DNA of 63,891 bases, counting the filler, from Ministeria vibrans ATCC 50519 (taxonomy: Eukaryota > Protista > Filasterea): assembly GCA_943704425.1 (NCBI GenBank). It is 11 parts of 11 records of this genome, joined end to end, with 100 filler letters (N's around TTAATTAATTAA, not from the genome) between each part and the next. Parts side by side here need not be neighbours in the genome. Positions count along the whole stretch, not along the records: positions 9,761 to 32,739 come from CALSCP010001072.1; 10 more parts are not named here. One strand, given 5' to 3'. Below the pieces are notes generated by a model that made no database searches, was not told the DNA's origin, and saw only the letters and a program-made list of their open reading frames with translations. The position numbers were made by a program, and so were the translations under genes. Of the stretch, positions 14,312 through 32,739 are shown piece by piece (the first letter of the stretch is position 1; each line of letters opens with the position of its first letter).

Positions 14312-17156
14312 ATGCTTGTTGTTGCGACACTGCTTGCGCTGGCTGCGGCTGTGCGCGGCGAGTACCTTGTGGGCGCAGGGCGGGCCGACATCACCGGACC
14401 CGCTGCGCAGGTCAACATGATGGGCTACGCCATGCGTAAGCACGCCCCCTCTCTGCCCCCTCACTGCCCCTCTCTCTCCCTCTCTCCGTCTCTCTCTCTC
14501 TCCGTCTCTCTTTCTTGTCGTTTCTGCCCTTTTCCCTTTGTCATCCGTCTTCTTTTCCTTACAAATCGTCATTTCCAGACCGATTTGTCCCCTCCCATTC
14601 TTCTCTGCCCACCCTGTACAGCGATACGCATCGACTTTCCACCCCGAATAATGCCCCATTCGCCAGCTTGACCGCTTTTTTTTTCTTTTTTTATTATGCT
14701 TATTGTTTCTTCTCTCTCTCTGGTGCGTAGCTGGCCAGACGACCAAGGGCATCCACACACGACTCTACTCGCGTGCGTTTATCATTGGGGAGACGACGCC
14801 GGGCGGCAAGCGTGCCTGCTTTGTCTCCATTGATGCGTGCATGGGTTCGCAGATTATGCGCATGAACGTCCTCACCAAACTGCAGACGCTGTACGGCCCG
14901 CTGTACAACACGGACAACCTGATCATCTCGGGGATCCACACGCACTCGGGGCCCGCCGGCTACTTCCAGTATGTGCTCTTTGAGATCACCTCGCTGGGCT
15001 TTGTCAAGGAGTCGCTGGATGCCATTGTTGACGGCATTGTCCTCTCCATCCAACGCGCACACGACAACCTCACGCCCGGCTCGATCACCGCGGCGCACGG
15101 CGAGCTTCTCGACGCGAGCGTGAACCGCAGTCCCAGTGCCTACCTGAACAACCCGGCCGAGGAGCGGGCGCGCTACCAGTACAACACGGATAAGAATGTG
15201 ACGCAGTTGCGTATCCGCGCCTCCAACGGCACCGACATGGGCGCCATCAACTGGTTTGCCGTGCACTGCACGTCGATGAACAACAACAATTCGCTCATCA
15301 GCAGCGACAACAAAGGCTACGCCTCGGCCATGTTTGAGCGCGAGATGAACAGCGCCCCGCGCGATCCCAACGTTGCACCTTTTGTCGCTGCCTTTGCCCA
15401 GAGCAATGAAGGCGACGTCTCGCCCAACACAGACGGTGCCAAGTGCATCAAGGGGCCACAGGTGAACATGCCTTGCGACTTCAACTCAAGGTATATTGTA
15501 TAGTCTGTCGAGTATCATAGTATTGACAATATTGTAATATTGTGTGGTGTTAGTACGTGTCTGGACGACAAGGGAAAGGCACGTGTGGAGCTGTGCATGG
15601 CACGGGGACCGGGTGGGATGGACGATGCACTGTCGACCAAGATTATTGGACAGAAGCAACTGGACAAGGCCAAGACACTGTTTGCAAGTGCGACGGAAGA
15701 AGTGACGGGCCCCATCGACTACCGTCACCAATTTATTGAGATGGGAGAGGCGCAAGTGCAACTGAGCAATGGAACGTGGCGCAAAACGTGTGTGCCGAGC
15801 ATGGGCGACTCATTTGCGGCCGGAACCACCGACGGACCCGGTGCATTTGACTTCAAGCAGGGCGATGCGACGGGAAACCCCTTTTGGGATGCAGTGGGTC
15901 ACCTGCTCAAGAAGCCGTCAAAAGAGCAGACGGAGTGTCAGGTGTGTGTTTATTAATTTTTTATCATCATTAATATCATTGGTCGTTTCATTTTTATCTT
16001 GGGCTTATTTTTTTTTGTTTTTGCTTTTGCGTCTGGTATTGTGCAGCATCCCAAACCAATCTTTTTGGACACGGGTGAGATTAAGGTCCCGTACGAGTGG
16101 CAGGTATATCAACCACACATTTTTGTCTCATTATACATTGTCTCTCATTTTCCCCCCACTTTTCTTTCCCGTTGTTCGTGTGTGTTTGTATAGGCACATG
16201 TGGTGGACGTGCAGGTGGTGCGCATTGGCCAACTGTTCATCATTGCCGTCCCCAGTGAGTTTACTACCATGGCGGGCCGACGCACGCGCGACGCTGTTGC
16301 CGCGGTGGTCCGTGCCAATGGCATTCCATCCGACCTTGTTGTCATTGCGGGTCTGTCCAACACCTACAGTGACTACACGACGACCTTTGAGGAATACCAG
16401 ATTCAGCGCTACGAAGGGGCGTCGACGGCCCACGGCCCCTTTACCCACTTGGCGTACACACAGGCACTCGTCAACATCACCAAGGACATGTTCGCCGGTG
16501 TTCCCAGCAACCCAGGTCCCGAGCCCCCGCATGACCAGTCCAAGCAGGTGTCCTTCCTCCCGCCCGTTCTTGAGGTAAAGGAAAAAAAAAAAAAAAAGAC
16601 GAAGAAAAAAAATGATGACGGCGACTCACTTGTGATCTGTTCTTTGGTGCAGGACTCGACACCGTCGGGCGTCAAGTTTGGCGACATGGTGGAGCAGCCG
16701 AGTGCGTCCTATACGGTAGGCCAGACTGTCACGGCAGTGTTTTGGTCGGCCAACCCGCGCAACAACGTGCGTCTTGAGGGTACCTTTTTGACGGTGGAGC
16801 GTCAGGCTTCAGCCGGTGCGCCCTGGCAGGTCGTGTACACTGACGCTGACTGGGAGACGCGCTACCGCTGGGAGGGCAAGATGCTGTCGTCGCACTCGCA
16901 CGCCAACATTACCTGGGACATCCCTGCAGACTACAAGGGCGTCGGGCTGTCTCACCGCATTCAGCACTTTGGCACTAGCAAGGCACTCGGTGGTCGTCTC
17001 TCTGACTTTGCTGGTACCTCGTCCACCTTCACTGTCACGGCTGCGCCCTTCGCCATTGCCAACAACGCCAACGACGACCTTTCTCTCCCCTTCCACCACA
17101 ACGACGATAACGTCGACGTCACCATCGACGGCGAAGTCAAACTGGTCCTTTTCTAA
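14312..17156 (+). CDS. ASAH2: Neutral ceramidase, secreted (multi-exon)
   Basis: Signal peptide; YLVGAGRADITGP..MMGYA; GIHTHSGPAG; NWFAVHCTSMNN; SDNKGYAS; NEGDVSPN; AAGTTDGPG; QRYEGAST. Confidence 0.96.
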
Positions 17157-17240: not shown

Positions 17241-20200
17241 TTATACATTTTCTTCGTGTCCGGCCGCGTCGTTGCCCACATCGTAGTAGGCGCGCAGCTC
17301 GTCGTCGGCGAGGCGCTCCTCCTTGGTTGGGCGGCGTTTCTCCTTGTTGAACAGGTCCATCTGTGCCCGCATGACACTCGGTGACATGGCGTACGCCTCG
17401 TCAGGATCGACCGACGAGCGCCCGTCGCCGTGCACCCGCAGCGACATTTCCAGGTCGTTTTGACTCACGTGGATCTTGTTGCGATGGCGTCCTCGCTTCT
17501 CAATAAACGACACGATTACAATGAGCAGGATAAGAACAACCAGAATCCCCGCAATCATGCCAAAGACCCACCAGAGGGAGGAGCCGCCGACCGTGTCCGG
17601 CTGGCGGGCACCTGACGTTGTCGCCATGAGCACGCTGAAGGACGTGACACACACCGTCAGCATGCCCGACTGCTCAATTGTCTCGTTCGCCAGCTGCACC
17701 CAGTTGTTGGCCGTCTCGTTGGACGCGCGCCAGGGGGCCACGGCAAGAATGGTCGTGTCGACGGGGAAGGTGAGACAGACAGGCTGCAGAAAGGTCGTGC
17801 CGTGCGGCATCAGAATGATCTGCGTCGACGCACGCAGACCGCGCGCGCCACTCGTCACAATGGACGAGCTCGACACATCCGAATACGCAATCTGCAGTGT
17901 GATGGGCGACGACACAGCATTGGCCGGAATTTCAATGGTGATATCGGCGCCTGCTAGCGTTGTCGTACGTCCCCCAAGACCCACAGCAATGTCATTGGTC
18001 GATGCGCAGAGGGTGCTCCCAATGAGTGTGGTACCGACGGGGCAGGCACACGAGAAGCTGACGCCCAACTGGGGCGTGCATACACCACCCCCCTGGCAGG
18101 GTGACGACGCACAGGCATCCACACGAGACTCGCACTGGGCACCTGTGTAGTCGACGGAGCATGCGCAGTCAAAGGAGAGCACGCCTGTGTCGTTGCACAC
18201 ACCCCCATTGGCACAGGGCGACGAGATGCACTCGTCGAGCTCCGAAAAGCAGTGGGTGCCACTGAGGCCGGCGGCGCACAAGCACGTGTAGCCGTCGAGC
18301 ATGTCGACGCATGTGGCGCCCGGTGCGCACGGGGACGACGCACACTCGTCCAGATCCACTGTGCAGTTTATGCCGGTATAGGCCGAGGAACACACACACG
18401 TGTAGGCGAGACCATCCACGAGACTGCCGATACATGTCGCGCCGTTCTGGCAAGGCATCAACGTCCCACAGGCACCCACGAGACATTGGTAACCCGGCAT
18501 GGTCGTCAACTCGCTGCAAAACTCATCCGCGGAGCATGGCGATGACTCGCACTCGTTAATATCCACGCTACAGTCGGCGCCAGTATAGCCAACGGCACAG
18601 ACACACACAGTCGCCGCGACCAGGTCGGTGCACGAGGCGCCATTGGTGCATGGCGACGACGCACACTCGTCCACCTCCGACGCGCACTCAGCGCCTGTGT
18701 AGCCAACGGCACACACACACACGTGTTGTGCAACGCCATCGACACAGGTGGCGCCATTCGCACAGGGTGACGACTGGCACTCGTCGATATTCTCGGCACA
18801 TGTTGCACCTGCAAACCCTTGCGCACAGGTACACGCGTACATGTTCGGCGTAGATGCAGGTGCGCTGCACGTCGCACCGTTGGCGCAAGGCAACGACGCG
18901 CACTCGTCCACGTCTGACTCACATTGACCACCTGTAAAGCCCACGACACAAGCACACTCAAAAAAGCCTGTGGCAGACCCCTCCGAGCACGTTCCGCCGT
19001 TGGAGCAGGGTGATGAGATGCACTCGTCGACATCCGACTCACAGAGCACACCGGTGACTCCCAGAGGACATTCGCAGGTGTACGATACAACGCCATCGAC
19101 ACAAGAGGCACCATTCGTACACGGTGAAGAGAGACACTCGTCAACATTCGCCGCACACGTGCTGTCGGTAAACCCTGCAGCGCAGGCACACTCAAAGTGG
19201 TTCGGCATGGATCCTTCAGAGCAACTTCCACCGTTGGCACAGGGCGACGAGGCACACTCGTCTACGTCCACTTCGCATTGGACGCCCGTGAATCCCGACG
19301 AACAGCTGCATGCAAAGCCAGCAACACCATCAATGCAGGAGCCTCCGTTGGCACAGGGCATGGAGAGGCACTCATCAAGGTCGATCGAACACTGCGTGCC
19401 CGTGTAGCCCTCGGCACAGGCGCAGTCATAGGTGTTCGGCAATGATCCTTCGGTGCAGGTGGCGCCGTTTGAGCACGGCAACGACACACACTCGTCCATG
19501 TCCACTTCGCATTGAACTCCGGTAAACCCGGGCGAGCATGCACAATCAAAGCCGTTGGCTATGGACACTTCCGTGCAGATTGCGCCGTTCGTACAGGGCG
19601 ACGATGCGCACTCGTCAATATCCGACTCACACACGCCGCCCGTAAATCCCTCGGCGCACACACACAGGAACGAGCCGGATGCCTCTTGCGTACAGATGGC
19701 TCCGTTGGCACACGGCGACGAGAGACACTCGTCAATGTCCTGCTCGCACAACAACCCGGTGAATCCCGCGAGGCAGGCACACTCAAAGAATTCTACAGAA
19801 GTCTCTTCGTCGCAAGAACCGCCGTTTTGACAGGGACTCGAGGCACACTCGTCGACGTCCGCCTCACAGTGATCGCCAGTGAACCCGGCGGGGCATGTAC
19901 ACGACCACGCACTACTGATCAGTGCGTCCACTGTGCACTCGCCGCCGTTTGAGCAGGGACTCGACAGACACGAGTCGGCAAACGCACAGGTGGCACCAAC
20001 ATATCCCGCCGCACACGCACACTCAAACGCATCAACCATATCAGTACATGTGCCTCCATTGGCACACGGCTCACTGGCGCACTCGTCCACGTCCGTCTCG
20101 CACTGAACACCCGAAAAGCCCTCGAGACAGAAACAACCAAATGCCGCACCCCACGAGCCACACTGACCACCGTTAAGGCACGGCGACGAGTCGCAGCCGC

Positions 20201-22512
20201 GCTGACGACAGAGGCACTCGTAGCCCCCAGACTCGGTGACGATGCACTCGTGATAGACATTGGAGGCACATGGTTGCGTAGCACACGCGCCATAATCGGC
20301 GGTGCAAAGCTCGCCGGTACGATCGGGCGGACAGGCACAACGGAAGCCACCCACAGCGTCGGTACAGGTTGCGCTGGGATCGCACGGTGACGACAAGCAG
20401 GCGTCGGCAATGTCGGTGGCGCATGTGAGTCCTGAGAATCCTGCAGCGCAGCTGCACGTGAACTCACCCTGTGTGTCCGAAGTGCACGTTGCGCCATTGG
20501 CACAGGGACTCGACGCGCACCCGGCGAGTTCCACGTCGCAGTAGGTGCCCGTAAACAGCGACGAGCAAGCACACGCAAGAAAGACACCCTCGCCATCGTC
20601 GGTGCAGGTACCACCATTGCGACACGGTTGCGCATCGCATCCGCGCGATTCGCATTGCACACCTGCAAGGCTGATGGAGCCACACACACACCTAAAACTG
20701 TTGATATCATCGACGCAGACGGGAGAGGGGCTGCCTGGGATTTGAACGCAAGGCGAGCTTGCACAATCGTCAATGTTTTCCGAACAGTCAACGCCCGTAA
20801 ACCCGGGGGCACACGACGCGCCCACGTCGACGCACACGTGTACGCCGCTGGCGATCATCACGCAAGGTTGCGAGAAATACGGACATGGGTTGGAGAGACA
20901 CGGGTCGGCAGGACACGCACAGAGAGGATTGGTTGAGTTTGTGGGACACTCGCATGAGTAGCCAGTCGACTGACTTGTCGAAGGGACGCACTCGAGCACG
21001 GCAAAGCAGGGCGACGAGGCGCACACATCAATCACTTGTGAACAGTCGGTACCCGTGAATCCTTCGGGACAGGCACACTCAAACATGTTGAGCATGGCCC
21101 CTTCGCTGCAGGAAGCGCCGTTTGAGCATGGTGACGAGGCACACTCGTTAAAATCGGTGTCGCAGAGAGTGCCGGTGAATCCAGGGGCACAAGTACACTC
21201 AAACAGGTTGGGCATGGCCCCTTCGCTGCATGTAGCGCCGTTTGAGCATGGTGACGAAGTACACTCGTTGATGTCGCTCTCGCATTGGGCACCGGTGAAC
21301 CCAGGGGCACAAGTACACTCAAACAGGTTGGGCATCGCCCCTTCACTGCATGTAGCGCCGTTTGAGCATGGTGACGAAGTACACTCGTTGATGTCGACTT
21401 CGCATTGGGCGCCGGTGAACCCAGGGGAACAAGTACACTCAAACAGGTTGGGCATCGCCCCTTCACTGCATGTAGCGCCGTTTGAGCATGGTGACGAAGT
21501 ACACTCGTTGATGTCGACTTCGCATTGGGCGCCGGTGAACCCAGGGGCACAAGTACACTCAAACAGGTTGGGCATCGCCCCTTCACTGCATGTAGCGCCA
21601 TTTGAGCATGGTGACGAAGTACACTCGTTGACGTCGACTTCGCATTGGGCGCCGGTGAACCCAGGGGCACAAGTACACTCAAACATGTTGGGCATCGCCC
21701 CTTCACTGCATGTAGCGCCGTTTGAGCATGGTGACGAAGTACACTCGTTGACGTCGACTTCGCATTGGGCGCCGGTGAACCCAGGGGCACAAGTACACTC
21801 AAACAGGTTGGGCATGGCCCCTTCGCTGCATTGTCCTCCGTTGATGCAGGGAGATGACGCGCACTCGTTGATGTCGCTCTCGCATAGGGAGCCGGTGAAC
21901 CCACTGTCGCATGTACACGAGAAAGTGTCAGGCGAAGACGGCGAGCAAGTGGCACCATTGCTGCATGGCGAGGAGATGCATGAGTCCTGCAGGGAGGTTT
22001 CGCAATCTTCGCCAGTGAACAGTGAGGGACAGACGCAGACAAAATCGTCGACGAGATCTTGACAGGAGGCGCCGTTGAGACAGGCGCTGCCATACAGGGC
22101 GCAATCGTCAATGTCAGTCTCGCACTGTACTCCTGTAAACCCCCCGGCACAGTCGCACTGGTACGTCTCTGTTTCTTGGCGACACGTCGCGCCGTTCGCG
22201 CATGGCAACGAGTCGCACAGACTCACCGCGTCGCACGCCTCTCCTGTCATTCCCGCGGGACACTCGCACATGTGAGCGTCCTCTGCCGCGTCAATACAAG
22301 TCGCAGTACCCACACACGGCGAGGACTGACACGTCGCCGACTGGGGAGAGAGAGAGAGAGAGAAGAAGGCAAAACCAAAAAAAAAAAAGAAACCGTGTGA
22401 GTTAATATATTTTGCAATTGACAGCGAGTGACACTGGTCTGCGTACCGCGAGATCGAAAGCCGACAGGAGGCAGCCAGCGACCAGGGCAAGGACGCAAAG
22501 AGAGCGGATCAT
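17241..22512 (-). CDS. Giant type I membrane protein: signal peptide, dozens of (Ca-binding) EGF repeats, ZU5-like domain, TM helix, ~80-aa tail
   Basis: Exon 1 MIRSLCVLALVAGCLLSAFDLA spliced to a ~5.1-kb exon of D-x-[DN]-EC-xSxPC-xNGxxC repeats; ZU5-like ITIEIPANAVSSPITLQI..LMPHGTTFLQPV; TM LWWVFGMIAGILVVLILLIVIVSFI. Confidence 0.9.
21075..21900. repeat. 120-bp coding tandem repeat (about 7 near-identical 40-aa EGF units)
   Basis: Lines starting at 21181, 21301, 21421, 21541, 21661 and 21781 are almost identical. Confidence 0.95.
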
Positions 22513-22775: not shown

Positions 22776-24068
22776 ATGTCTTTGGAAAATACGTGTGCGC
22801 TGGTATCGTGCTCCAGCCCTATCGAGATCAGCAATGGCTATGTGGACGTTCGCTTTCTGGAGCGCCCCTCAGACGCATCGCCTTTTACAGTGTCCTCGTC
22901 GAACTATTCGGCGCGCTTTCATCGACCCTGTTACACCAACCTCGTCTCAGGCACACAACGCGCGCGATCGTCGACCGTGGCGCTGACCAAAGGCGAACGT
23001 GCTGCAGTCTTGCTTGCCCATGAGACTGCCGAGTTCCACGACAGCGACGCCGATGTCGAGCAGAGGGCGACGGAGCTTGTCCAACTGTTGCGTCGGGCAA
23101 AACACGCCGTGGCGTTCACCGGAGCCGGCATTTCCACGTCGGCCGGCATTGGAGACTACCGTGGCAAAGATGGCAAGTGGACGGCGGAAGATCGGGACGC
23201 AGAGCTGGCCAAGAAGGTGGTGGTGGCGACTGCGGATGAGGAGGAGAGCAGAGCGGAGGAGGAGGAGGAGGAAGATGGCATCGAGTACGAGCATCTGCGC
23301 CCCACGTACACCCACGAGGCGCTCAAGGTGCTGTTGGACCGAGGACATCTTCACTATGTTATTTCGCAGAACGGCGACGGGCTCCACCGCCTCAGTGGTG
23401 TGGGCACCTCGCAACTGTCGGAATTGCATGGGAACGTATTTGTAGAGCATTGTGAAAAGTGCAATCGCGTGTACGAGAGACCGTACTACGTCATGTGGGA
23501 CGAGGCATCGCAGTACTACGAGGAAGTGCTGGATGGCGTGAAGAAGCACACGGTAAAGGCACCACCGCGCTCGGCGAAGCGTTGCGGTGGATGCGGTCTC
23601 ACGCACCGCACGGGACGCCGATGCGACAGCTGCAAGGGCTTCCTCAAGGACACCATTATCAACTTTGGAGACCAGCTGGATGAACCGGTGCTGTCGCGAG
23701 CCGAGAAAGAAGCAAAACAATCGGATTTGATGATTGTCCTTGGCTCGACCGTTCAAGTGACTCCCGCGTCGTCCCTTGTCTCGGCCGGAAGACGCACGCG
23801 CAATTTGGCGATGGTGAACCGACAAGAGACGGCCAAAGACCGACTGTGTACGGTGCGGACGTTTGGTGATGTGGACCGAGTGATGAAGATTGTGATGCGA
23901 TCACTGCTGGGCGCAAAAGAGGAGGGGGAAGTGATGGGGGAAGGGCGGGTGGGACGTCTGAGAGAGTATGCACACAAGAGACAAAGCGGAGATGGGGACA
24001 ACGGTGGCAGTGATGAGGGTGAGGAAGCGAGCGGTCGTCCTGTCAAGAAGAAACTCAAGAGAGTATAA
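22776..24068 (+). CDS. Class IV sirtuin (SIRT6/7-like NAD-dependent deacylase), intronless
   Basis: FTGAGISTSAGIGDYRGKDGKWT, PTYTH, ISQNGDGLHRLSG, ELHGNVFVEHC, HRTGRRC, LKDTIINFGDQL; C-terminal basic NLS-like KKKLKRV. Confidence 0.92.
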   Translation: MSLENTCALVSCSSPIEISNGYVDVRFLERPSDASPFTVSSSNYSARFHRPCYTNLVSGTQRARSSTVALTKGERAAVLLAHETAEFHDSDADVEQRATELVQLLRRAKHAVAFTGAGISTSAGIGDYRGKDGKWTAEDRDAELAKKVVVATADEEESRAEEEEEEDGIEYEHLRPTYTHEALKVLLDRGHLHYVISQNGDGLHRLSGVGTSQLSELHGNVFVEHCEKCNRVYERPYYVMWDEASQYYEEVLDGVKKHTVKAPPRSAKRCGGCGLTHRTGRRCDSCKGFLKDTIINFGDQLDEPVLSRAEKEAKQSDLMIVLGSTVQVTPASSLVSAGRRTRNLAMVNRQETAKDRLCTVRTFGDVDRVMKIVMRSLLGAKEEGEVMGEGRVGRLREYAHKRQSGDGDNGGSDEGEEASGRPVKKKLKRV

Positions 24069-24585: not shown

Positions 24586-24670
24586 TATTATTATAAATTT
24601 TTTGTTTGTTTAGTAATTTATTTTACCTTCTGTTGACGCACTTTGCTCAGCTGCTGCTCCGCCCAAATGC

Positions 24671-27600
24671 TCACTCCTCACTCAGAGTGCGCTCCATTGA
24701 TGCAATCTGGCCCCGCAGGTCGCCCATGGCATATTCCTCGCCCTCGTCGGTGACCAGCACCTCGTCGTCCGGAATGCACGCCAGCGGACTCAACGCCGAG
24801 TCTGTGCGCCGTGTCAGCACCACATCCGTTCTAACATCGTACGCCTCGTTGTTGGATTCCGTGTCGACGTATGTAGCACTGTCTTGCTGGCGCGCCAAAT
24901 TCCCATTCAAATCCGCATTGTCTTTAAACATCGGATTGGTCTCCATCGTGGCAAACCCGTGTGATCCGTGTCCATCCTACCCAAACCATACGATATCGGA
25001 CAATATTACAACTGGCATTCACATATACATGAACAAGAATATATCTTACCCACATGAGCGACTCGTTAGCGGCTATGCTCGAGCGCGCCGATGTTGCGGC
25101 ATGCGGCGCCAGCGCCAGTGCCTCCTCAACAAATTCTTCCCACACTTCCGTTCGCTTTTGAGAACTACACAATCATCACAAATGAAACAGACAATTTAAC
25201 ACACACAATCATAGTTGGTATGACTTAATCATTACAGCCATTTGATTACACACCCACACACATACATGTACGTACATACATAAATACACGCACTCACAAA
25301 CACACTTGTATGACACACACACGTTCTCACATACATTGAACTGTTCAGTCGGTGCACAGCCTCCGAGCGTCGCTCCCGTCGCCACACCACACCAGCGACA
25401 ATGAGCACAGCAAGAACGGCAACAGCAGCGCCCGCTGCAATAAACGTCATGAATGCGGCACCCGCTGTGCTCCCTTGTGCACCCGTCTGGGGTGCCGACG
25501 ACAGCCCCGACACCACAGGCTGGCCGCCGTTGAGTACGTTGAACTCGCCGAGTCCATTGCCGCTCTGAAGAGACGCAATCACGTCCGTCGCCGACACGGG
25601 TGTGCTACTGTTGAACTCGTTGACGCCGAGCACGACCGAGCCACTCGAACTTGAATATGTGTCCACGTCACTCGCGTCAATGTTGGTCCAAACAGCGCGA
25701 CGTCGGTCCTTTGAAAGCGCACTCATGTAGTCGTTGATTTGTTGCACAATGATGGCGATAAATGCCGACACGTTGTCCATGACCACGCTGAGCGACACCG
25801 CCAGTTGGAACTCAACCATCTGCGCCAGCTGTTCGCTGGTAAAACTACCCGAGACACACATGTTCACCGTCAGACCGCTGGTCACTGTCGCAAGGTCAAA
25901 GCCAAAAAAGCACGCGGCACAGCTGGAGTCTGTTGCGGACGAACACGTCGTGAAGCCCGTGTAGCAACCGGCAATGGTGGTGCATTTGGTGCACGTCGAC
26001 GCGGCACCCACCGACGCTGGGCCAAAGTGGCCGCTCTTGCACACGCACTGGTACGAGCCCACCTGGTTCACACAGGTTGAGCGCACAACGTTGCACAGGT
26101 TGTCGCTGGCTGACGCACACTCGTCAATGTCGCTCGAGCACGTCGCGTCCGTGTAACCCGTCACACATGCACACGCAAACCCATCCACAAGATCTTGGCA
26201 AGTCGCACCATTCTCGCATGGGCCCGACGCACACTCGTCAATGTTCGTCTCGCAGTNNNNNNNNNNNNNNNNNNNNNNNNNNNNNNNNNNNNNNNNNNNN
26301 NNNNNNNNNNNNNNNNNNNNNNNNNNNNNNNNNNNNNNNNNNNNNNNNNNNNNNNNNNNNNNNNNNNNNNNNNNNNNNNNNNNNNNNNNNNNNNNNNNNN
26401 NNNNNNNNNNNNNNNNNNNNNNNNNNNNNNNNNNNNNNNNNNNNNNNNNNNNNNNNNNNNNNNNNNNNNNNNNNNNNNNNNNNNNNNNNNNNNNNNNNNN
26501 NNNNNNNNNNNNNNNNNNNNNNNNNNNNNNNNNNNNNNNNNNNNNNNNNNNNNNNNNNNNNNNNNNNNNNNNNNNNNNNNNNNNNNNNNNNNNNNNNNNN
26601 NNNNNNNNNNNNNNNNNNNNNNNNNNNNNNNNNNNNNNNNNATCGTCAAGGCAGGTGGCACCGTTCTCGCACGGGTTCGATGCACAGTCGTCAATGTTGT
26701 TCTCACATTGGCCACCGTTGTAGCCCAGGACGCAGTCGCAGTCGAAGCCATTCACTCCGTCGACGCATGTGGCGCCGTGCTGGCATGGATTCGACGCACA
26801 CTCGTTGACAGTGTTGTGACAAGTGCTCGAAGGGCCGTACGACTTGCTGTAAGGACAAATCCTACAAACCGAGATATTCAAACAAAGAACAATAATAATG
26901 ATAATAATAATTGTAAGTATGAATAACGTATCACACTAATTATAAACAACATTAATTGATTGTCACTTACGTGCACGAAGTGGCTGTGGTTGAATCGGCA
27001 GTGTAGTAGCCTGGAGCACAAGCGGAGCAAGTGGACGCCGACGACTTGTACTTGTCAACACCACAGTCGGTGCAGGAGGCGGAGGCGGCAGGGCTGATTT
27101 TTCCGTTGGGACACGACGTGCATGACGACGCAACGGCGCCAGAGTAGGTGCCGGCCGCGCAATCGAGACATAGTTCGGCCGAGGCCGCGCTGTACTTTCC
27201 TGCGTCACAGTCAATGCACGTGGTGGAAGCCACTCCTGCGGAGTATTTGCCGGCGGTGCAGCTGGTGCAAATGGACGCTCGATCAGCGCTGAACGTTCCG
27301 GCCGAACATGAGGTACAGCTGCCTGCCTTGGATCCACTAAGAAGAACGGCAAAGTGTATGATTATGATATCCACCGTCGCTTTTGACTTAGGACAGCTGT
27401 TTACCTGTAGGTACCAGCGGGACAATCGTTGCACGTCTACGTCGAGCGAGATTGGTTACAATAACAACACCCCGATAACAATAAATACGCCGTACCGATG
27501 AAGACGAAGGAGCGTACTTGCCTGCTGCGCAATTCGTGCATTCGGAGGCTTTAGCGCCTGAGTATGTTCCACTGGCGCATGCCGGACAAGCGCTACAAGA

Positions 27601-28867
27601 ATAATGGTGATAATATTAATAATAATAATTAGAAGAAGAATACAACCCATTTATAAACAATCCTCAATACACCACAAATCGAACCTTCCGGTTTTGGAGG
27701 AGGAGTACTTTCCTGCAACACAATTGGTACAGCTGGTAGAACCCGACGAGGAATACGCGCCGTATCCACAGTCCTTACACGACTATTGTAACAACGAGTT
27801 ATCAGAACATAAAGGAAATACAATAAGAGTAGAATTAATAAAAGAAGCAGAGTCCATTAATAATTAATAATTAATGGGTTGTATTCTTCTTCTTCTAATA
27901 ATTAATAATAACAATAATAATAGTAACAATAATAATATAATAATAATAATAATAAATTTATTATTATTATTATAGTTGTTGTTGTTGTTGTTGTTATTAT
28001 TATTGTTATTATTACTATTATTATTATTATTATTATGATTATTATTATGATTATTATTAATTTTTGTTGCGTACCGAAGAAGCGTATTGCGAGGTATACT
28101 TGCCGGCAGGGCATTCTGGACAGGATGTCCCGTGATAGCCGGGTTGATAATGACCAATGTCACACCAACTACATTGACTTTGGTTAGGGCTGCTCGTGTA
28201 CTTGCCAGAAAGACAGGAGTAACACACGTAACTGTGAGAAAGAAACAATAGAGCAAGCCGTGAAAAAAGAGGAGAGATTCGGAGACAATAATTGATGTTT
28301 ATACTAGTGTTCGCAGCCACATGTGTCACAATCATTGGTATACTTAGTGAAGAATTTTTTGCAAGAGCTACGTCCAAGGACAGTGTAAGTTGACGGAATG
28401 AGAGTATTATGCTTTCGTTTTCTGAAGCCAGAAAGTGTTTTTCGAGAGGTGGATTTGGGAGTTGTTTGGGAGGAGGGGGATCCAGGAGAAGTAAAGGGCA
28501 GGCTTGTAGAATACTGATGAGCGCCCATGAAAGGGTTAAGTTCGAATTAAGTTCGGGCTCTTTCGCTCAACCCAACCTCATAATAATCATAAAAATTATG
28601 CACATGCCACATGATTAAAAAAAAATCGTGAAACGGAGATGACAGATTCAATCACGCTTACTTGCACTGCTGACATTCGTTATAATTTGTGCCACGATAC
28701 CAGCCTGGGGTACAGGTTGGTAAAGCCCGCGCCTGGCGACTGAGCGTCGGTAGGTAGGGCGCACGCGCAAAGCGAGATTTCTCAAATTTAGAGTTTTCAC
28801 TGGCGACGACAGCAGAGAGAGACAATGCCAGCACCGCCAGGAGAAGAAGAATGGAGAAGCACTTCAT
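24671..28867 (-). CDS. Type I receptor A: signal peptide, Cys-rich CxxC-PxG (GCC2/ephrin-receptor-like) repeats, EGF repeats, SEA/Notch-HD-like module, TM helix, Tyr-containing tail (gap inside)
   Basis: MKCFSILLLLAVLAL signal; small Cys-rich exons (CPECPAGKY, CTSCSAGTF); EGF repeats; RRR..GSVVL; TM FIAAGAAVAVLAVLIVAGVVW; tail with NPMF and several Tyr. Confidence 0.85.
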
Positions 28868-31653: not shown

Positions 31654-32739
31654 CTAAACCTCGAGAAGATCCTCGAACAAGGCATCCATTTGCGAACTGT
31701 CCGTCTGGCTTTCGCGCGTGGACGGACCGGTGTACCTGCCTTCCTTGATCCGCTGCATTGACGACATGCGCCGCACCAGCACAGCCTGTCGGAAATATGT
31801 AAAAACGCCAATCAATACTTTTACTTTTTGCTTTGTTTGTTAAATAACTTCAGTATTATCGTTCTTTACCTTCTGTTGACGCACTTCCTTCAGCTGCTGC
31901 TCCGCCGACTCCTGCTCATCAGCCACTGATCTGCCCAAATGCTCGCTCAGAGTGCGCTCCATTGATGCAATCTGGCGCGCCTCGCCCCGCAGGTCGCCCA
32001 TGGCATACTCATCACCCTCGTCGGTGACCAGCACCTCGTCGTCCGGAATGCTCGCAAGCGGACTCAACGCCGAGTCTGTGCGCCGTGTCAGCACCACATC
32101 TGTACTGACATCGTACGCCTCGTTGTTGGAATCTGTGTTGGCGTATGTAGCGCTGCCTTGCTGGCGCGTCAAATTCGCATACAGATCAGTGTCCACATCG
32201 TCTTCAAACATCGGATTGGTCCCCATCGTGGCATAGCCATCTCCATCCTGCCCAAATAATGCAAATGTTAAAAACCACACTGACACTCGCTAAGATGAGC
32301 AACGTCTTACCCAGAAGAGCGACTCGTCACCGGCTCCGCTCGTGCGCGACGATGTTGTGGCATGCGGCGCCAGCGCCAGTGCATCCTCAACAAGTCCTTC
32401 CCACACTTCCATTCGCTTTTGTGCACTACACGCAAACAGAAAAAAAAACACAAACATAAACAAACATAAACACAAACACAATTAGGAAAACAATCGTTAG
32501 ACACGTACATTGAACTGTTCAGTCGGTGTGCAGCATCCGAGCGTCGCTTCTGACGCCACATCACGCCAACAACAACGAGCGCAACAAGAACGGCAACAGC
32601 AGCGCCCGCTGCAATAAACGTCATGGATGAGGCACCCGCTGTGCTCCCTTGTGCACCCGTCTGGGGTGCCGACGACAGCCCCGACACCACAGGCTGGCCG
32701 CCGTTGAGTACGTTGAACTCGCCGAGTCCATTGCCGCTC
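31654..32739 (-). CDS. Receptor B: 3' end of a tandem paralogue of receptor A (juxtamembrane, TM helix, full tail), 5'-truncated by the contig end
   Basis: Same exon structure and high similarity to ~24300-25565; ends ..MDALFEDLLEV*. Confidence 0.85.

Follow-up and report, generated by a model that had tools for sequence, protein, structure and literature searches.

A predicted SEA-like, membrane-adjacent domain with an invariant Arg-Arg-Arg motif in a family of EGF-repeat receptors from Ministeria vibrans

Did a forerunner of the Notch heterodimerization domain exist in a non-animal lineage, before it was joined to LNR and ankyrin repeats? This question is raised by a gene on the minus strand of a 63,891-nucleotide stretch of DNA (the window) from Ministeria vibrans ATCC 50519 (assembly GCA_943704425.1). 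The gene, which we will term receptor A, encodes an EGF-repeat receptor, and a preliminary description noted that between its last Cys-rich repeat and its transmembrane (TM) helix it has a series of motifs in the same order as in Notch. We find that the juxtamembrane module of receptor A is a sequence-orphan new member of a known structural class, the SEA-like domains, and that its predicted fold is nearest to the membrane-adjacent domains (MADs) of cadherins and to the IA-2 and collectrin group, not to Notch. We lean, without great confidence, towards the following explanation: receptor A and its paralogs would be type-I receptors in which the membrane-adjacent SEA-like domain is cut by a convertase in a loop marked by Arg-Arg-Arg (RRR), stays docked as a heterodimer, and connects to a tail that recruits adaptors.

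All of the motifs that were originally quoted for receptor A are encoded at 25367-25846 (minus strand), in the order that had been described, and they lie in a real exon that continues from the EGF repeats. Specifically, an open frame on the minus strand (25232-26881), with a gap of N's inside it, codes for EGF repeats and a stalk rich in Cys, along with the motifs that had been quoted, the TM helix, and RRERR. The module stretch shares this single frame with the EGF repeats (Pfam EGF, E = 4e-10; EGF_CA, E = 3.5e-10). Because paralogs elsewhere in the genome keep the protein (47% identity, E = 4e-34, for the copy on contig C1236), the module stretch is, as judged from its sequence, coding and not a chance frame. 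The module itself (25496-25846, 117 amino acids) is, on the basis of its paralogs, profile-profile alignment with hhalign, and structural matches, a putative divergent SEA or MAD-type domain with a ferredoxin-like fold. It includes MVEFQLAVS (25793-25819), the RRR (25697-25705), SGSVVLGVNE (25616-25645), and VSATDVIASLQSG (25559-25597). About 12 residues separate its predicted last strand (beta4) from the TM helix (25382-25456), which reads AFMTFIAAG...VVW, is a hydrophobic stretch of 25 residues with an Ala/Gly-rich outer half, and is followed by the basic stop-transfer sequence RRERR (25367-25381).

Protein and profile searches of the organism's own genome (29.7 Mb in 2860 contigs) showed that the module is shared by at least seven paralogous receptors of type I, which form a family. 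Besides the copy on C1236 (L007), there are copies on C1265 and C1139 and more divergent ones on C1435, C1633, and C2677. The window also contains a tandem paralog, A' (31840-32739, minus strand, identified by sequence match), which is cut by the contig edge, so that the C-terminal part of the module, the TM helix, and the tail exons are present. A' is 89% identical to receptor A over query residues 95-155 (the end of the module and the TM helix), and its three-exon tail structure is also alike. All copies have the same order of parts: EGF repeats, Cys-rich stalk, module, a short Ser/Gly linker, an Ala/Gly-rich TM helix, and a basic stop-transfer. The C-x2-C ... C-x2-C pattern of the stalk is kept in all of the paralogs. 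When the seven paralogs are aligned (MAFFT), they all agree in just five columns: a Val, an Asn, and the RRR. Apart from these columns, the paralogs are 22-46% identical.

Some other features of the family are worth recording. A 481-bp contig (L004, C2318:1-481) is nearly identical to the stalk and the start of the module of receptor A, with a few amino-acid differences, and is probably a haplotig or a collapsed duplicate. The ectodomain of the C1236 paralog (L007:2324-6046 and 645-2171, both on the plus strand) has blocks of about 150 amino acids that are repeated between groups of EGF repeats; these blocks have no Pfam assignment. The outer half of the TM helix is rich in Ala and Gly in all of the paralogs (IAAGAA, IAGAAAA, IIGAAAGG, IAGGAAAA, IIGGVVG, and IAAIAGG; 25420-25456 in receptor A). 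Such runs are a trait of helix-packing motifs and of the substrates of intramembrane proteases.

The preliminary description expected a SEA-like fold, and structure prediction agrees. The AlphaFold model of the L019 paralog, which was built from seven sequences, has a pLDDT of 84.4 and a pTM of 0.79, with strands at residues 14-19, 59-67, 70-78, and 110-116 and helices at residues 23-46 and 88-105. The subfamily of receptor A and the subfamily of L019, L015, and L014 are homologous by profile-profile alignment (hhalign, probability of 97.7%, E = 1.7e-12, 98 columns), so the fold can be carried from L019 to receptor A. Thus, a SEA-like, ferredoxin-like fold for the receptor A module is supported via the model of its paralog.

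Which proteins have the most similar structures? When the L019 model was compared to the PDB with Foldseek, the first match was mouse protocadherin-15 EC9-MAD12 (E = 4.8e-5), and the next ranks were Nup54, the ACE2 neck, CDH23 MAD28, CELSR1, and IA-2/phogrin. Alignment of the same model with VIA-align gave Z-scores of 13.2 for PCDH15 MAD12 (112 residues aligned, root-mean-square deviation of 2.9), 12.3 for the ACE2 neck, 11.4 for Nup54, 10.1 for IA-2, 9.9 for CDH23 MAD28, and 9.6 for CELSR1. Generic ferredoxin folds (HMG-CoA reductase and RRM domains) scored 8.2 or less, MUC16 SEA scored 6.9, and dystroglycan scored 6.7. Notch2's negative regulatory region (NRR; 2oo4_B) scored 6.1 with 90 residues aligned, amid RRM domains of equal Z. 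Because of its modeled fold and its position directly before the TM helix, we place the module in the SEA-like class, nearest to the MAD / IA-2 / collectrin group and not to mucin SEA domains or the Notch heterodimerization domain. The membrane-proximal domains of cadherins, which had been named beforehand as comparators, are thus the best structural matches. Pei and Grishin reportedly grouped the MAD and IA-2 types of proteins in 2017 with the Notch heterodimerization domain, dystroglycan, and EpCAM as divergent SEA domains.

MAD12 of PCDH15 (also known as the PICA or EL domain) is ferredoxin-like, mechanically weak, dimerizing, and similar to Nup54, and such domains are also predicted in CDH23, PCDH24, FAT, and CELSR cadherins (bioRxiv 10.1101/460097). 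In PCDH15 and CDH23, as in receptor A, the membrane-adjacent domain lies directly before the TM helix. However, there is no detectable sequence similarity between the module and the MADs of PCDH15, CDH23, or CELSR1 (12-14% identity in structural alignments), and the receptor A module is preceded by EGF repeats and a Cys-rich stalk, not by cadherin repeats. Also, the invariant RRR loop of the receptor A family has not been described for MADs, and receptor A has a protist host, not a vertebrate one. IA-2 (ICA512) and phogrin (PTPRN and PTPRN2) are type-I proteins with a juxtamembrane, SEA-like ferredoxin fold (Z of 9.4-10.1), and their mature ectodomains are made by a dibasic convertase cut. In contrast to the site that we propose for receptor A, the convertase site of IA-2 is N-terminal to the domain and not inside it, and the cytoplasmic part of IA-2 is phosphatase-like. 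The ACE2 neck (collectrin-like) and the alpha-beta domain of Nup54 have the same class of fold (Z of 11-12.3), and the copies in ACE2 and collectrin are juxtamembrane, but these domains have no sequence similarity to the module and have other partners and contexts (Nup54 is nucleoplasmic).

At the level of sequence, the module is an orphan. Pfam gave only EGF-type matches for the receptor A exon, with no SEA, NOD, or NODP at E up to 1, and six of the paralog modules had no Pfam match, including to SEA, NOD, or NODP, at E up to 10. The SEA family (PF01390) had no match anywhere in the genome at E up to 0.1. Against all PDB sequences, neither the receptor A module (phmmer) nor a profile from six paralogs (hmmsearch, E of 0.9 or above) had other than chance matches, and the entries for the Notch NRR, MUC1, and dystroglycan were unmatched. 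A word-based search with the 1241-amino-acid L007 paralog gave no match within its module, and a metagenome scan with a single protein found no relatives. These negative results speak to absence in other lineages, not in sister species. Among 1.84 billion representatives, the sole match of the profile (P0001) was spurious: it is a repetitive helical protein, and it matches profile positions 5-39 only. In the ESM Atlas, two of the paralogs, which are 26% identical to each other, have protist clusters without names as their nearest neighbors; when named families are considered, one Pfam-SEA cluster is matched by both (at 0.82 and 0.83), a result that we view as a lead only.

The most distinctive feature of the module is the RRR, which accounts for three of the five invariant columns and is kept in all seven paralogs. 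In the L019 model, the RRR is part of the coil that follows helix 1, and pLDDT within the core falls to its minimum (79) in the block of residues 41-50. After the triplet comes a Pro-, Gly-, and Ser-rich loop that varies in length. The RRR is thereby predicted to be in an exposed loop between alpha1 and beta2, where it is a putative site for a kexin/furin-like convertase (xRRR|A).

Does the genome encode an enzyme that might cut there? It contains two convertase genes that combine a subtilisin domain (Peptidase_S8) with a P-domain: convertase 1 (L030:1550-4363, plus strand), with 938 amino acids, and convertase 2 (L033, C257:27500-36500, minus strand). Enzymes of the furin/kexin type cut their own prodomain just before the catalytic domain. 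The prodomain of convertase 1 contains SRRRA, RRRRA, and ERRRA, and from the ERRRA it is 18 residues to the conserved sequence with which the catalytic domain begins (DPMFKHQWHL). Convertase 2 has RQRR|D at the equivalent predicted self-processing place. We predict that ERRR|A is the self-processing site of convertase 1. It matches the RRR of the receptors: xRRR|A, which is the motif of convertase 1, is present in five of the seven receptor modules. This match is circumstantial but specific support for processing at the RRR, and the specificity of convertase 1 may correspond to this motif. We infer that the invariant RRR as a convertase site is the better-supported hypothesis for how the module is processed.

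The receptors of this family have one architecture in common: after the signal peptide come repeats of the Cys-rich and EGF types, then a small stalk that is rich in Cys, a membrane-adjacent domain of about 110 residues, a TM helix, and a tail that is acidic and contains NPxF and Tyr motifs. For these receptors, we propose the following mechanism. On the way through the secretory pathway, a kexin/furin-like convertase would most likely cut at the RRR in the alpha1-beta2 loop. After the cut, beta1 and alpha1 would stay with the ligand-binding ectodomain, while beta2-beta3-alpha2-beta4 and the TM helix would form the membrane fragment. Since beta1 is one of the inner strands of a ferredoxin-like sheet, the two fragments would presumably remain docked non-covalently until they are unfolded. 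Force on the ectodomain could then pull apart or unfold the joint, and the receptor A tail would recruit adaptors of the PTB or SH2 type. The outcome would resemble the heterodimers that are formed by Notch S1 cleavage or by SEA domains, with the cut elsewhere in the fold.

Several observations weigh against this proposal. First, none of the RRR sites has a basic residue at P4, and thus they differ from classical furin sites (R-x-K/R-R). Second, the invariant RRR could be a structural element or a binding patch instead. Third, the AlphaFold model of receptor A itself has a pLDDT of just 46 and draws residues 4-47 as a single helix, with no beta1 (this model used four close paralogs as its alignment, and the construct ended right at beta4). 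Fourth, without a sequence-level link to any protein of the SEA class, homology rather than convergence is not proven.

The alternative that survives best is that the domain is not cleaved: it would be a spacer that fixes the geometry of the ectodomain at the membrane, or it would drive parallel dimerization in cis, as in MAD12, and the RRR would be structural or would bind a ligand or a glycan. MAD12, the best structural match of the module, is reported to induce parallel dimerization, and no cleavage of it is known (bioRxiv 10.1101/460097). The Ala/Gly-rich TM helix is compatible with helix-helix packing, and the lack of a basic residue at P4 fits this alternative as well. On the other hand, if the role of the triplet were structural and nothing else, one would not expect it to be the sole invariant motif or to precede a loop that varies in length. 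It would also be a coincidence that the RRR matches the predicted processing motif of the convertase itself. So, we consider an uncleaved spacer or dimerizer to be unlikely, although it is the alternative that we take most seriously.

Another possibility is that receptor A cuts itself, by classical SEA autoproteolysis at G|SVVL in a strained beta2-beta3 hairpin, as in MUC1 and dystroglycan. This site was highlighted in the preliminary description, and one part of that claim stands: GSVVL (25628-25642) fits the G|S[VI]VV consensus and lies at the predicted beta2-beta3 turn or within two residues of it. The MAFFT alignment places the Gly-Ser of receptor A at G68-S69 of L019, which is the turn between the strands at 59-67 and 70-78, and L019 also has a Gly-Ser followed by hydrophobic beta residues, as canonical SEA domains do. 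(Canonical SEA domains such as those of MUC1 and MUC16 and dystroglycan's SEA-like domain have the same topology as the module, and cleavage would give a non-covalent heterodimer in both cases.) However, hhalign puts the Gly-Ser out of register by two residues, and five of the seven paralogs lack it (they have SASS, SSSS, GAE, GGTT, or NGR), so self-cleavage does not appear to be a property of the family; for receptor A alone it is possible. Furthermore, the self-cleavage of SEA domains depends on strain in a tight turn (PMC10327162; bioRxiv 10.1101/279315), and relieving the strain abolishes cleavage (PMC10327162), while receptor A has a flexible run of SSSS before the turn. Canonical SEA structures also match the L019 model with a Z of only 6.7-6.9, and, as mentioned above, there is no Pfam SEA match. 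Overall, self-cleavage of receptor A seems improbable.

Finally, the idea that the module is a proto-Notch domain, that is, a homolog of the Notch heterodimerization domain that has a furin site like S1 and an S2-like site gated by force, in a protein that had not yet acquired LNR or ankyrin repeats, is largely refuted at the level of sequence and topology, and we give it hardly any weight: receptor A does have EGF repeats upstream and, ahead of its TM helix, both a basic site and a beta-alpha-beta unit, the Notch heterodimerization domain is in the same broad SEA-like class (bioRxiv 10.1101/279315), and the Notch2 NRR is among the structural matches, but its Z is the same as that of unrelated RRMs, the paralogs lack NOD and NODP matches, no Notch chain was found in the PDB sequence searches, and the RRR is before strand 2 whereas S1 of Notch is between strands 3 and 4 of the heterodimerization domain (PMC2726630). 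The argument from the order of the motifs is not supported either: 'SATDV' is found in receptor A alone among the paralogs and the 'GS' is not conserved. Where Notch has three LNR, receptor A has the Cys-rich stalk and EGF repeats, and as was originally described, there is no match to LNR (PF00066) or to ankyrin in any exon-sized open reading frame of the receptor A gene (Pfam). The remaining likeness is that both are EGF receptors with an alpha/beta domain and a basic processing motif before the membrane, and that the predicted outcome, a heterodimer, would be analogous to that of S1 cleavage.

The genome does encode a protein with other parts of Notch. On C2097 (L029:1417-5319, minus strand), there is a protein of 1301 amino acids that lacks EGF repeats but has a signal peptide, three LNR, a spacer that looks alpha/beta, a TM helix, and ankyrin repeats. 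Its stretch from the LNR to the TM helix is unlike the module (hhalign probability of 0.1%). By its domain content, this protein and not receptor A is the nearer Notch-like candidate. Thus, the attractive proto-Notch reading of receptor A is corrected, and a Notch-like gene can be pointed out in the same genome.

The gene content of the genome bears on both the lineage and the proposed role of the tails. Profile searches gave at least 155 matches for tyrosine kinases (the best is near 300 bits), at least 28 for SH2, 3 for PID/PTB, 3 for integrin beta, 7 for LNR, and none for Wnt. Such gene content, together with a genome of roughly 30 Mb, is known for filastereans such as Capsaspora. A non-animal source that resembles unicellular holozoans is therefore plausible, in agreement with what had been surmised about the lineage, which is of interest for the origins of animals. 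Because of the SH2, PID/PTB, and tyrosine-kinase content, docking of phosphotyrosine-binding or PTB proteins to the tails of the receptors is credible. NPxF is found in five of the tails (receptor A, A', L007, L015, and L019), and the tail of the L007 paralog (L007:6052-6741) has three YxN and two NPxF motifs. The tails of receptor A, A', and L007 also have VE[ED]ALALAPH in common, and an acidic box that ends in MGDLR is shared as well.

It is at SEA-like juxtamembrane domains that Notch, dystroglycan, mucins, the hair-cell tip link, and IA-2 are controlled mechanically and proteolytically. What is new here is a sequence-orphan member of this class in the EGF-repeat receptors of a protist that has a rich phosphotyrosine toolkit, which suggests that ectodomain joints that are nicked but still assembled may be older than animals. 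As a much more speculative extension, which we think has little chance of being right in full, adhesion receptors before metazoans might have used a convertase-nicked SEA/MAD joint as a force-releasable link between an EGF ectodomain and a phosphotyrosine tail, and the two halves of Notch might have been separate genes before animals. If so, an EGF ectodomain on a cleaved alpha/beta heterodimer and an LNR-guarded ankyrin effector were separate pre-animal genes, and an origin of Notch by domain shuffling would be directly testable.

The rest of the receptor A gene can be traced on both sides of the module; its exons were searched and folded one by one. This part of the window is eukaryotic in style: its exons are rich in GC, its spacers are AT-rich microsatellites, and its introns are short and of the GT-AG type. 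The tail is acidic, has about 150 amino acids, and is reached via two GT-AG introns of 170 and 73 nucleotides. The stop-transfer and the start of the cytoplasmic tail are at 25335-25381 and end at a splice donor (AT|GTATGT, 25335/25334). The second tail exon (SQKRTEVWEEFVEEALALAPH..., 25050-25164) has an AG acceptor and a GTAAGA donor. The last exon (24671-24976) encodes NPMF and three acidic Tyr motifs, a conserved box (DDE[VL]L..D.GEE..MGDLR), and a TGA stop. The tail motifs that had been listed (NPMF, YVD, YDV, and YAM) are all found in this last exon. The tail exons have no Pfam match, and the tail lacks a RAM/ankyrin intracellular domain of the Notch kind. The tail of receptor A stops about 30 codons earlier than those of A' and L007, due to a frame-shifting indel of 22 nucleotides (as seen by comparing 24590-24780 to 31830-32010, both on the minus strand; EQQL..VRQQKVK is still readable out of frame in receptor A). 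The shortening may be genuine, or it may stem from a mistake in the assembly.

On the N-terminal side of the module, the Cys-rich stalk (25847-25993, C-x2-C ... C-x2-C) matches no Pfam family; Pfam finds only the EGF repeats upstream of it. Two EGF or calcium-binding EGF repeats (25994-26254, with the E values given above) come before the stalk in the protein, and a gap of 385 N (26257-26641) hides part of the EGF region. More EGF repeats lie upstream of the gap (26642-26881; Pfam EGF, E = 1.7e-11). Cys-rich repeats that resemble those of ephrin receptors or TNFR are encoded at 26967-27434 (minus strand; Pfam Ephrin_rec_like, E = 1.6e-11), probably as an upstream exon of the same gene, and Pfam identifies a further ephrin-receptor-like exon at 28057-28377. 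The probable first exon (28658-28867, minus strand) has an ATG, a hydrophobic leader that would be the signal peptide, and then a Cys-rich sequence; we assign it to receptor A tentatively.

Three other genes are near receptor A in the window. First, 22776-24068 (plus strand) encodes a deacetylase of the Sir2 family (Pfam SIR2, E = 2.4e-29). Second, a multi-exon gene at 14312-17156 (plus strand) looks, on visual reading alone, like that of a neutral ceramidase. Third, a single exon at 17241-22490 (minus strand) encodes another receptor, with 1749 amino acids, 32 EGF repeats, and acidic Tyr motifs in its tail. The place that the SEA-like module takes in receptor A, immediately before the TM helix, is occupied here by a ZU5-like domain that is also extracellular (17541-18140; Pfam ZU5, E = 1.2e-4, 22.7 bits versus a cut-off of 21, when scanned alone). 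The ZU5-like domain ends in TSFSVL, which, we presume, recalls the HFS self-cleavage motif of ZU5-UPA proteins.

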